From positions 62,001-126,000 of the forward strand of contig QPMI01000709.1 in assembly GCA_004431415.1 (NCBI GenBank): a DNA stretch of 64,000 nt, given 5' to 3'. Source of the DNA: Cyanophora paradoxa CCMP329 (Eukaryota > Plantae > Glaucophyta). The notes beneath the pieces were generated by a model, which saw only the letters and a list, made by a program, of their open reading frames with translations, did not search any database and had not been told where the DNA came from. Made by a program: the position numbers and the translations under genes. Below are positions 55,168 to 62,196 of the stretch, piece by piece. Each line of letters begins with the position of its first letter. Position 1 is the stretch's first letter.

Positions 55168-55981
55168 TGCCTCCGGCGCCTCTCCGCCTCTCTGAGGCGA
55201 AGGCGCTCTTCCCGAAGCGACGGGCCGCGGCCCTCCTCCTGCCGCCCCCGCCGTCATTGGCGCACACGCGGTAAGTGAGCGGCGCCTCGCACCGGTTTGG
55301 GAGGCTCCCACGCGGGCGGCGCCCTAGCCCGCTCCTGCTGTGCTCTGCATCCGCCCGCGCCTTCAGCGCCGGTAAGTCAAAGGCGGGGCAGCGCGCACGG
55401 GAATAGGGCCGCCCTCTGTGGCGGGGGCGACGCCGATCCTGCACGGTCCCTGCCCGGGCGTGCAGGGAAGACCTGTGCTGGTGCCGCTGCTGGGCGGTGC
55501 GCGAGCCGGCTCTCCCGCTCGACAAGTTCTGAGCGGCGCCGCTCGATAATGCGCTGTAGCGAGAGCTGCGCCGGGTCCGCCTCGGGCCCTAGACGGCCTC
55601 CATAGTTCTCAAAGTGCTCGAGAGTTTTCTTCTCCTCCTCGATCTGCTCGTGCGCGTCGCGGCGTCTCCGCTCCCGGACTTGTTTCTCGAGGGCGTCGGT
55701 GAGGGCTGACTGCGCCCTCTGACGCTCCCGCAGCCTGTGATTCGGCAACCATTGAGTGCGTAGCTAAGATTTTCGCTCCCATCGCCACGTAAAGAATCCG
55801 TAGCTATTGCACGCGGCACGCGCTAAGATTCCGTAGCTAAAAGTGCATAGCTAAGATTCCCGCCCCCGGAAGACGCACTGCTGGAGAAGCGGGCGCTCGT
55901 CCGCACCCTCGGCGCCTCGCTCCAGCGCTCTTCGCGCGCCGCCGGCGCAAGCTTCGTGTCTGCGCGCAATCCACGAAGCAT
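51263..55981 (-). CDS. CSPP1: Centrosome and spindle pole-associated protein 1-like (coiled-coil, ciliary tip), multi-exon; start tentative
   Basis: Two copies of the CSPP1 motif (YDPWGKAGAGAPIRDAAGNII; GRGGAGAPLRDAAGNAVTDL), repeated LxxQxxE coiled coils, and C-terminal RRNEARLQRL..LLNDF..SLAAESSFV. Several apparent indels in the ~82% GC stretch. Confidence 0.65.
51831..51852. repeat. Poly-G tract (G22), probably intronic in the CSPP1-like gene
   Basis: Homopolymer read directly. Confidence 0.85.
55137..55163 (-). repeat. (CAG)9 microsatellite encoding polyglutamine
   Basis: (CTG)9 on the plus strand, in the E/Q-rich frame of the CSPP1-like gene. Confidence 0.85.
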
Positions 55982-56187
55982 ATCAGCTTGCGGACTGCTG
56001 GAAAACCGAGGGGCATTGCCGGCAGGCCCACGGGTCCCGGCTTTCGCCCGAACCCGAAGCTTGGCCGAGGGGGTGCTGAGGCTCTGGCATATCGCCCGCG
56101 CGCTAGAGGAAGCTGCCGGGGGCTCACCGTGCTGCTTCCCAAGTTGGGCTCGCTGAAAGGAGTTAGCGTACCCCAGCAGATCGCAGG

Positions 56188-58949
56188 ATGTCCTGCGAGA
56201 ACGGCAGCCCCAGCGCATTCTCGACGGTCGCGGCCTGCATATCCAGCCGGGCGGCGACCCTCTCGCGCGCCCCGCTCGGCTCGATCGTCACAGCTCGCCC
56301 GGCGTCGCTGGCGCGGTTGACGGCGGCGTCGCGGGCCAGCCCGAGCACACGCGTATCGCACCTCGTGCCTTCCCGGCCCGGCTTCCTCGGCCAGCGCTCG
56401 TGGAGCAGCCGCCCGCAGCTCGCGGCGCGTTCCTTCAGCCGCGGCGTGTGGATGTCGCCCCGTAGCTCGAATTCCGGTGCGCATACAGACCCTTCGTAAG
56501 GATCCGCTTCGTCCGACGCGCTCATAGCACCGGTGGCCGTGCGAGCGTCCGCGACGGAAGCGTCGGCATGCCCGGAGGAGTTCATCGCGTTCGCGCACAA
56601 GCTGGCGGACGCGAGCGGGGCCGTGATCCGCAGGTACTTCCGCACGACGGTGCCCGTCGACGACAAGGCGGACGCGTCGCCGGTGACGATCGCGGACCGC
56701 GAGTCTGAGACCGCCATGCGGTGAGCTTCCTTGCGCTCGCCCTCGCGGCCGCCCCTGACGGCGCGCAGGGAGCTGATCGAGGCGACGTACCCGGACCACG
56801 GCATCTTTGGCGAGGAGCACGACAAAGTGCGCATCGACGCCGAGTGGGTCTGGGTGCGCGCCGCCCGCGCCCCGAAGGCCGCGGCGGGGCCGGCGGGGCG
56901 AGCGGGGCGGGGCGCCAGGTGCTGGACCCCATCGACGGCACCAAGTCCTTCATCACGGGCCGCGCCGAGTTCGGCACGCTCATCTCCCTCCTCCACAACG
57001 GCCAGTGCGCCGCCCCGCACCGCCTCCCGTCCGCCCGCCCGCCCGCGGCGGCCGACGCGGCGCGCAGGCCCGTGCTGGGCGTGATCAACCAGCCGATCAC
57101 GAACGAGCGCTGGGTGGGCGCCAACGGGTCGCCCGACGGGACGACGCTGAACGGGAAGCCGGTGCGGGTGCGGGACTGCGGCGAGCTGGGCAAGGCGATC
57201 CTCTACTGCACGACCCCGCACATGTTCGCGGGGGCCGACGCCGAGGCATTCGAGCGCGTCCGCAGGGCCGCCAAGGCGCGCCCGCCCCGCCTGCGCGCGC
57301 CGCGCGCCGCCCCGCCAGCGACGCGCCCCCGCAGGTCGGCCTCTACGGCTGCGACTGCTACGCCTACGCGATGGTCGCCTCGGGCTTTGCCGACCTCGTG
57401 CGCCCCATTCTCTCGATACCTGAGCTCAACTTAGCTTCGAGGCATTGGCCTCGACGCCAAGAGCTTCTCGAGCTCAAGCTAGCTTGCTTTATGGGCTTAG
57501 CCAGGCGTCGCGGCAGGTGGTGGAGGCGGACCTGAAGCCGTACGACTACTGCGCGCTGGAGCCCGTGCTCCGCAACGCCGGCGGGCGCCTGACGGACTGG
57601 TTCGGGAACCCGATCTCGCTCCAGTGCGACGGGCGCGTCGTCGCGGCGGGGTCGGCCCTCGTCCACGCGGAGGCCGTCCGCGTCCTCGCCGCCCAGCCGA
57701 CCGTCTCTCCGCTCGTGCCCCGCGCGCCGGCCCGCGCCGGCCCCGCCCCCAAGCTGCAGAGCATGACGGGCTTCGGGAGCGGCACGGCGACGGTGGACGG
57801 CATCACGGCGCGCGTGGACGTGCGGAGCGTCAACGGCCGCTCCTGCGACGTGATCATGCAGCTCTCGCGCTCCCTCGACCCCAGCTCCGAGCACGCCCTC
57901 CGCTCCACCGTCCGCCGCACCCTCGTGCGCCCGCCCGCCCGCCCGCCCTCCCGCCTCGCGCCCGCCCAGGCCGTTCCGGGCCCCGCTGAGCACGATCGGC
58001 GCTGCAGGGGCGGGGCACGGTGACGATCTCGGGCGGGGTGCAGTCGGCGGGCGCCGGGGTGCTGGGTGTGGAGCAGAGCCCGGAGGTTCTGCGGGAGTAC
58101 CGGAGGAGCCTGGAGGCGATCGCGGCGGCGACGGGGGCGCAGGGCCCCCTGACCCTCGACCACGTCCTCCAGGCGATGCGCATCTGGACGCCGCCCGAGC
58201 CGCCGGCGCGCAACGCGGCGAAGGCGACGCTAGCGGCGGCGGAGGCGGCGCTGCAGGAGGTCGTGCGCCTGCGCGAGGCCGAGGGCGCCGCCCTCGCCCG
58301 CGACCTCGAGCGCTCCCTCGACCGCCTCGCCACCCTCGTCGACGCCCTCGACGCCCGCGCCCGCGACCGCCTCCCCGCCCGTGCGCCCCCGCTCGGCGTC
58401 CGCCCGCCCCGCCCCGCCCCGCCGGGGCTGACTGGGCGGGGGCAGTGCGGGCGAAGCTGGAGGCGTCGGTGCTGGCGGCGGCGGGGACGGTGCAGAGCCT
58501 GGAGCCGGGGCGCCTCGAGCAGGAGGCCGTCCTGCTCGCCGCCCGCGCTGACGTCACCGAGGAGATCGTGCGCCTGCGGAGCCACCTCGCCCTCTTCCGC
58601 TCCGCCCTCGGCTCCGGCTGCCCCGCCGCCGCCGACGGCGAGGGGCCCTCCCCCGGCATCGGCAACAAGCTCAACTTCCTCACCCAGGCGCGCCACCCCG
58701 CCCCCCGCCTGCGCCGCGCCTGTTGCCGCGGCCTCTGAGCGAGCGTTCCTCTCGCAGGAGATGAACCGCGAAGCGAACACGGTCGCCTCCAAGGCGAACG
58801 ACGCCCCCGTGCGCCCCCCGCGCACCTCAAGCTCGCCTGCCCCTCCCTTCCAGCGCTGACCGCGCGGGGCGCGGCAGATGGCGCACACGGTGGTGGAGAT
58901 CAAGGACGAGGTGGAGCGCATGCGGCAGCAGGTCCAGAACCTCCGGTGA
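56188..58949 (+). CDS. Fusion protein: plastid transit peptide + histidinol-phosphate phosphatase (IMPase family, HisN/HISN7-like) + YicC/YloC endoribonuclease
   Basis: Ser/Ala/Arg-rich N-terminus. IMPase motifs SPVTIADR, GEE, WVLDPIDGTKSF, YGCDCYAY and LKPYDYCAL. The same exon (57517-57924) continues without a stop into SMTGFG..RSVNGR; later exons give GRGTV, DVTEEIVRLRSHL, GNKLNFLTQEMNREANTVASK and VERMRQQVQNLR* (TGA 58947-58949). Confidence 0.88.
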
Positions 58950-59307
58950 TACCGACTGCTCCGAATTCGGGCGCGCTAGCGCTCCCGCGCGCCCCCTCAG
59001 CTCCCTGCTCTCCTACCTATAGCTAATCCTTCCCGAATGACCTTCCCCCAAAACCTTCTCCCGAGTCCGCTTGCGCACTCAATATTGTTTAATTTCAAAT
59101 GCATTCGTTTCATGCCAGCGTGGATGCATGATATCGATATCGATGCGCTCTCCGTACGTCTAAAGCTGCAAACTCCGTGAATTTGAAATGAGACGGGTGC
59201 TCTCGGGCGTGGTGTGGAGGGGGCGGGGGATCTCAGGGGAAGACAAAAGAAGGGCTCGCGATCGACCGCCGCGCGGGGGAGGAGAAGAGGGCGGGGTGGG
59301 TCCGGGT

Positions 59308-62109
<2,802 letters not shown>

Positions 62110-62196
62110 ATCGCTGCGGAGGCTGCGGAAGGCGAACCAGCCGCCGGCAGCCGGCACTGGGGGGATACTCAAACTTTCGATTACCCGACCTGCGCG

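Follow-up and report, generated by a model that had tools for sequence, protein, structure and literature searches.

Does a single nuclear gene of the glaucophyte Cyanophora paradoxa encode both an enzyme of histidine synthesis and a bacterial-type endoribonuclease, and what would such a protein do? The question is raised by a 64,000-nucleotide stretch of the strain CCMP329 assembly (contig QPMI01000709.1, positions 62,001 to 126,000; hereafter the window, whose own numbering is used throughout), in which an earlier note, made from the sequence alone, had described one spliced frame running from a transit peptide through a complete histidinol-phosphate phosphatase (HisN) domain and a Pro/Ala linker into a full YicC/YloC domain. 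The gene is organized as follows, all features lying on the plus strand:

56188-58949, plus strand: HisN-YicC fusion gene, Cyanophora paradoxa g23602, 689 aa (contigs, script translation, EukProt identity)
56188-56476, 56528-56720, 56769-56853, 56919-57004, 57068-57275 and 57335-57397, plus strand: exons 1-6
57517-57924, 58008-58380, 58446-58687, 58758-58808 and 58878-58949, plus strand: exons 7-11
56477-56527, plus strand: intron 1, 51 nt, GT-AG (contig joint)
56188-56547, plus strand: predicted transit peptide for the plastid, aa 1 to ~103, with intron 1 inside (composition, pLDDT and the features of PMC4510345)
56558-57693, plus strand: HisN/HISN7-type histidinol-phosphate phosphatase domain, aa ~107-367, with introns 2-6 inside (TIGR02067, Medicago HPP, Foldseek)
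57517-57924, plus strand: junction exon, in which HisN C-terminus, linker and YicC N-terminus share a frame (Pfam, contigs)
57694-57753, plus strand: Pro/Ala linker, aa 368-387 (contigs; pLDDT <50 at aa 370-382)
57754-58946, plus strand: YicC/YloC domain, aa 388-689, Met391 at 57763, with introns 7-10 inside (E. coli YicC alignment, Foldseek, TIGR00255)
58559-58564, plus strand: catalytic Glu607-Glu608 (E. coli E216/E217), intact
58767-58772, plus strand: Arg653-Glu654 (E. coli R251/E252), intact
58926-58928, plus strand: Gln683 (CAG) at the position of catalytic E281 (alignments; runs without a conflicting base)

The open reading frame comprises 11 exons and 10 introns, and translation of the joined exons gives 689 residues with no internal stop. 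The introns, eight GT-AG and two GC-AG (57276-57334 and 58688-58757), are 48-119 nt long, short ones in a region of 73% GC, and an in-frame TAA at 56497-56499 is removed with intron 1. The model is 100% identical to the EukProt protein tig00022075_g23602.t1 of C. paradoxa (search id P0187); the similarity searches used either single exons or this protein, while the joined exons served for translation and the identity check. Two sequencing runs from two studies, X1 and X5, each yielded one spliced contig covering the whole reading frame (56175-59114 or 56184-59102), with lengths of 2248 and 2227 nt that are exactly the spliced lengths predicted from the model; the RNA status of these runs is a software guess and hence probable, yet the contigs are spliced. 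Contig joints list nine of the ten introns, and the contig pieces imply the tenth, 57925-58007, which adjoins a skipped repeat. Neither the RNA nor the DNA runs list a base that differs from the gene.

The junction itself lies within one exon. In both contigs 57517-57917 is continuous, and exon 57517-57924 matches Inositol_P (E 1.6e-6) and YicC-like_N (E 1.7e-10) in the same frame, with Inositol_P found in the exons in front of it and YicC-like_N and _C behind it. The earlier claim of one spliced frame joined inside a single stop-free exon thus holds, and the RNA check across this exon that the note had proposed was borne out by single spliced contigs from two studies. An exon-joining artefact or misassembly was rejected on the unbroken junction exon and on the fusion gene of Porphyra, which is a single, intronless frame. 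A separate yicC transcript starting at Met391 was looked for as well; no contig begins there, although start sites are invisible to contigs. Bacterial contamination was dismissed, and nuclear residence upheld, on the introns in both halves, the eukaryotic neighbours and the orthologues in other algae.

The neighbourhood is compact. A spliced minus-strand transcript at 55400-56150 (introns about 55735-55878 and 55960-56128, seen as CT..AC), of coiled-coil or low-complexity appearance, reaches ~56150, some 25-40 nt from the fusion contig start at 56175, and this very tight head-to-head pair possibly shares a bidirectional promoter. Its intron 55735-55878 contains three short TAGCTAA-containing repeats (55755-55867), and AGCT-rich motifs similar to them occur in intron 57398-57516 of the fusion gene. 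On the other side, a minus-strand gene at 59087-62172 encodes an FtsH-like AAA metalloprotease with Walker A and HEXXH-type motifs and an N-terminal extension that has an M-F start, as glaucophyte transit peptides typically do; the contig at the 3' end of this gene (59087-59308) overlaps that of the fusion gene (to 59114).

The front half is a HisN-type enzyme. It scores 294.9 bits against TIGR02067, above the curated cut-off of 275.15, as opposed to 109.7 bits for the CysQ model and 81.8 for a SuhB-type model, and it matches the Medicago (E 1e-79 for Medicago HPP) and Zymomonas enzymes by both sequence and predicted structure (Foldseek TM 0.89-0.94, target-normalised). We inspected the motifs of histidinol-phosphate phosphatases (HolPases) as defined in PMC5516325, in which HisN is described as a homodimer. 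Motif 1 is present (K143, D145, S147-T150, D153), as are the metal motifs, read as GEE, D-x-I-D-x-T-K and Asp with a non-Gly residue four positions on, in motifs 2 (G175-E177), 3 (D192, I194, D195, T197, K198) and 6 (D318, L322). Motif 4 lacks its Pro (Ala205), and the HolPase-specific motif 5, an Asp with aromatics, is present as D294, Y296 and Y298, as in Medicago HPP. The description of a complete HisN domain with intact metal motifs is supported by the cut-off and by motifs 1, 2, 3, 5 and 6. Among the matches listed, the closest stand-alone HisN proteins are mostly labelled alphaproteobacterial (Rhodospirillales), with 60-66% identity.

The back half is homologous to YicC over its full length, through to the C-terminus, aligning with E. 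coli YicC at E 3e-21. Both YicC_N and YicC_C domains as well as the YicC fold are recovered (Pfam, PDB sequence matches, Foldseek); the top Foldseek matches are 8VER, 8VES and 8HVJ, and only YicC structures gave significant E-values. Against TIGR00255 the Cyanophora half scores 159.3 bits, just under the cut-off of 167.5, which the Galdieria orthologue passes at 191.3. Ten residues of E. coli YicC are known whose loss abolishes cleavage (PMC11417398), and nine of these are retained: the RNA-binding or positioning residues M5, N28, R30, F244, R251 and R280 as M391, N414, R416, F646, R653 and R682, and the catalytic glutamates E216, E217 and E252. The exception is E281, one of three metal-binding glutamates whose loss abolishes cleavage (PMC11417398), which is Gln683 in an ungapped C-terminal helix. 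Glu occupies this position in 120 of 120 bacterial proteins and at 84 of 84 bacterial loci, the scan pattern having accepted either residue, whereas Gln recurs in Gloeochaete and Hildenbrandia. Because this one catalytic test fails, we class the Cyanophora domain as a YicC homologue rather than as an active YicC; the earlier description of a full YicC stands for its length but not for its catalytic set. In E. coli, an E281A exchange, Ala being the substitution tested rather than Gln, leaves no cleavage and makes RNA binding ten-fold tighter (bioRxiv 2026.09.15.751841), and the glaucophyte Glu281-to-Gln change suggests a cleavage-weak RNA clamp.

The red-algal copies look different. Over 45 intact ones, conservation at the ten essential positions is 98.9%, where an average column reaches 56%, and none of 100000 random position sets matched this level; all ten residues are kept in 40 of the 45 and the four catalytic glutamates in 44. 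Since the essential residues are retained, the fused YicC of red algae is likely an active RNase. Decay is also seen: the Porphyridium protein (P0049) carries a tail behind HisN that a profile alignment still matches to YicC (probability 88.6%), the tail of Erythrolobus (P0016) gives no convincing YicC alignment, and three related red sequences (P0040/P0191/P0192) have decayed YicC C-termini, all persisting as tails of 230-280 aa. The RNase is therefore dispensable in some lineages, namely Porphyridiales and one red subclade.

The linker between the halves is variable, spanning 47-122 residues between fixed anchors across the fusion orthologues, and is modelled with low confidence; the monomer model of the whole protein reaches a pTM of 0.51. 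A short G-x-G motif upstream of the YicC start is common to Gloeochaete and red algae. Within the Cyanophora linker, an in-frame 45-nt segment (57715-57759) has GT..AG ends and a C-rich, intron-like composition, yet it is retained in both full-length contigs, so that a hidden intron was discarded. The segment may have originated by exonisation of an intron or may be spliced out on rare occasions, and a minor form lacking it is possible because contigs drop rare variants; the frame would hold in either case.

Plastid targeting is plausible from the composition of the presequence, which matches the cyanelle transit peptide features of PMC4510345. It is Ser/Ala/Arg-rich, with Ser and Thr making up 30% of the first 60 residues and a single acidic residue; Phe11 falls inside residues 1-18 and just outside 1-10, and V-R-A near residue 103 is the likely cleavage site. 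At about 103 residues it is long against a median of 63, and residues 1-104 are predicted to be disordered (pLDDT <50). Full-length red orthologues have N-terminal extensions of 60-120 aa, with an early Phe in most. HisC, the preceding enzyme of the pathway, is present in the cyanelle proteome (PMC4510345 supplement); a search of the same supplement, a small data set with older gene models, by name and one peptide did not find the fusion protein.

How widespread is the fusion? A search of 1.84 billion representatives with the junction exon returned as top matches proteins of 580-870 aa aligned across the junction, in which the order Inositol_P, YicC N, YicC C was confirmed. With the full-length protein, about 50 red-algal clusters carry the architecture among the matches listed; the searches scored 8000 candidates, and lineages beyond that set may be missed. 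Named carriers are Galdieria (four species), Porphyra, Chondrus, Gracilaria, Hildenbrandia and the glaucophyte Gloeochaete wittrockiana, and in Porphyra umbilicalis genomic DNA the fusion is a single intronless frame. In a tree rooted on glaucophytes, the unnamed fusion clusters all fall among red algae, and the tree broadly tracks red-algal groups where names are known. No YicC was carried by green-lineage HISN7 among the matches listed, land-plant and Chara HISN7 terminating at or just past the phosphatase domain. The architecture search that the earlier note had called for thus extends the fusion to a second glaucophyte and to red algae.

The two halves point to different histories. The HisN half is closest to alphaproteobacterial sequences; in HisN trees the glaucophyte, red and green copies each form a supported group on a backbone without resolution, Archaeplastida monophyly is left unresolved, and no pairing is rejected, glaucophyte plus red and the others having p-AU 0.38-0.47. 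An earlier study of histidinol-phosphate phosphatase was likewise inconclusive on its origin (PMC3518814). The nearest bacterial YicCs, 35-42% among the matches listed, are from Bacteroidota, Rhodothermota, Ignavibacteriota and Myxococcota. The separate domain phylogenies proposed in the note single out no YicC donor. YicC is reported to be absent from Cyanobacteriota (bioRxiv 2026.05.21.726821), and a cyanobacterial donor was rejected: the only yicC locus with a Synechococcus label (sp. UW140, contig L011) is separated from a Bacteroidota sequence (L008) by a very short branch in the tree and is probably mis-binned. An operon-derived fusion was also rejected, as hisN-yicC adjacency is absent at the loci examined: among the matches listed, 84 yicC loci had no HisN in the surrounding 5-8 kb, and around 80 metagenomic HisN/IMPase loci no yicC occurred within 3 kb. 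In two Verrucomicrobia (L036:4217-5080 and L070:8136-8642), an IMPase gene lies ~2 kb downstream of yicC and scores well below the HisN cut-off; that of L036 is SuhB-like.

Whether the fused YicC arose once is judged from several trees. Quick unconstrained trees place the Cyanophora YicC apart from the red copies, with GC-rich Myxococcota and Latescibacterota, and of 44 red-specific residues it has only 5, which would speak for separate glaucophyte and red origins or for a swap of the Cyanophora YicC from another bacterium; the split in these trees is, however, probably driven by GC composition. Constraining the fused YicCs to one clade yields a tree that is better by 16.5 lnL (p-AU 0.85), Cyanophora and Gloeochaete YicC group together and share the E281Q change, the domain order is identical, and the bacterial adjacency that would ease repeated fusion was not found, so that we regard separate origins or a swap as decidedly improbable. 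None of the trees made recovers a supported clade of glaucophyte and red YicC. Because the AU test prefers one clade, a single origin is allowed and mildly favoured.

The reading that best joins these observations, and that we hold to be rather probable, is a plastid HisN-YicC protein of one fusion origin with largely independent halves, cutting RNA in red algae and clamping it in glaucophytes. What it starts from is observed directly, namely one transcript, the identity of the domains, their distribution and the residue states. One nuclear gene would give a two-part protein imported into the plastid stroma, its front part acting as the histidinol-phosphate phosphatase of histidine synthesis and its back part as a bacterial-type, putatively hexameric YicC clamp on structured (stem-loop) RNA. 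The fusion would go back to a single event in an ancestor shared by glaucophytes and red algae, in which a yicC of non-cyanobacterial source was put behind hisN and so acquired a promoter and a plastid address. On a flexible tether the two halves would work mostly independently, which is the simplest reading because the linker is variable and of low confidence and because E. coli YicC with an N-terminal SUMO tag remains active. Most red-algal YicC halves would cleave plastid RNA with Mg2+, whereas in glaucophytes the exchange of Glu281 would weaken or abolish cutting while RNA binding is kept, leaving an RNA clamp or protector.

Other readings of the joined domains weigh the same evidence differently. 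HisN dimers might bridge two YicC trimers at the N-terminal alpha/beta latch, three dimers per hexamer, with histidinol-phosphate or histidinol binding opening or shutting the clamp and so tying amino-acid status to plastid RNA turnover. The retention of the fusion across glaucophytes and most red algae, the symmetry of the HisN homodimer (PMC5516325), the location of the YicC trimer-trimer latch in the N-terminal domain, where HisN is tethered, and the shared G-x-G motif are all in line with such coupling; yet it is weakened by the variable, low-confidence linker, the pTM of the monomer model and the stand-alone HISN7 of green plants, and we consider it unlikely. A bolder version is improbable too: an overlooked, non-cyanobacterial plastid RNA-processing enzyme, the first eukaryotic YicC, with its clamp gated by the fused HisN, would represent an ancestral switch from metabolite to RNA turnover, made non-cutting in glaucophytes and lost in green plants. 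Alternatively, YicC might have lost its action on RNA and merely oligomerise or stabilise HisN, as E281Q in both glaucophytes and Hildenbrandia and the persistence of decayed tails in Porphyridium, Erythrolobus and the P0040/P0191/P0192 group could indicate. A pure scaffold would not need its RNA-binding face conserved, however, whereas R30, R251, R280 and the catalytic glutamates are near-invariant in the 45 red copies and Cyanophora itself keeps nine of ten essential residues, so that a scaffold role falls short and is quite improbable.

An opposite reading takes the Cyanophora YicC as an ordinary active RNase, with Gln683 tolerated or offset by a neighbouring acid. All remaining essential residues are kept, and Gln, whether newly acquired or retained, is present in two lineages or more and so may be near-neutral; against this, E281 binds metal and is indispensable for cleavage, and it is Glu in all 204 bacterial sequences examined, which makes unaltered activity doubtful. 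The earlier note had also proposed that the phosphatase works on RNA ends made by YicC. Nucleotide phosphatases such as CysQ do have the IMPase fold, as does SuhB, which is associated with RNA, but the HisN signature lies far above the CysQ and SuhB-type models, the HolPase-specific motif 5 is present, and stand-alone bacterial HisN proteins are 60-66% identical to this half; end trimming is thus scarcely plausible. RNA binding or turnover is the best supported of the three functions that the note had put forward, given how strongly red algae conserve the residues for RNA binding and catalysis.

What appears new is the architecture, both families and the orthologous sequences being already known. 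The YicC RNases were discovered recently and have been described as a bacterial family, with few known substrates. In the freely accessible literature searched, we found no description of a HisN-YicC fusion, of YicC outside bacteria or of the red-algal YicC half, and the YicC papers searched for such terms mention neither eukaryotes nor algae; the ESM Atlas gave no usable match. With the orthologues annotated as phosphatase alone, the claim that the fusion is undescribed held up within the searchable literature. The fusion would define a eukaryotic, probably plastid, branch of YicC whose RNA-binding and catalytic residues are kept across red algae, and adds a candidate of non-cyanobacterial inheritance to plastid RNA metabolism. 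The search for substrates is tractable because the plastid transcriptome is small; Galdieria and Cyanophora are cultivable, and the natural variants (intact, E281Q and decayed) form a ready series for separating cutting from clamping. As a rare character uniting glaucophytes and red algae and absent from the green-lineage matches, the fusion bears on early Archaeplastida history as well as on hitch-hiking as a route by which foreign genes gained plastid targeting.

A comparison with known systems places each half. With plant HISN7/IMPL2 (Medicago 5EQ7) and alphaproteobacterial HisN (Zymomonas 4N81; TIGR02067) the front half shares passage of the equivalog cut-off and the HolPase motifs, and with the plant enzyme also an N-terminal extension; it differs by the 320-aa C-terminal YicC, the phosphatase domain being followed by no more than a few residues in land-plant HISN7 and by no more than about 20 in that of Chara. 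SuhB, a Nus factor, is similarly an IMPase-fold protein linked to RNA metabolism, but the domain here is HisN-type and its link to RNA comes through a separate fused YicC. Bacterial YicC/YloC proteins (E. coli YicC, B. subtilis YloC and C. difficile CD25890; PF03755 plus PF08340, TIGR00255) share full-length homology, the predicted fold (TM about 0.67) and nine of ten essential residues with the Cyanophora half. Those examined are stand-alone and adjoin gmk, rpoZ or relA, whereas the fused YicC belongs to a eukaryotic nuclear gene with introns, a presequence and HisN in front, and in glaucophytes has Gln at the E281 position. The proteins of Chondrus (R7QSR5), Porphyra (A0A1X6P6F7), Galdieria spp. 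and Gloeochaete (EP00276_P011863) are orthologues of identical architecture already in databases, where the red-algal entries are named 'histidinol-phosphatase' or 'IMPL2' after the phosphatase alone; unlike Cyanophora, most red-algal orthologues retain E281.
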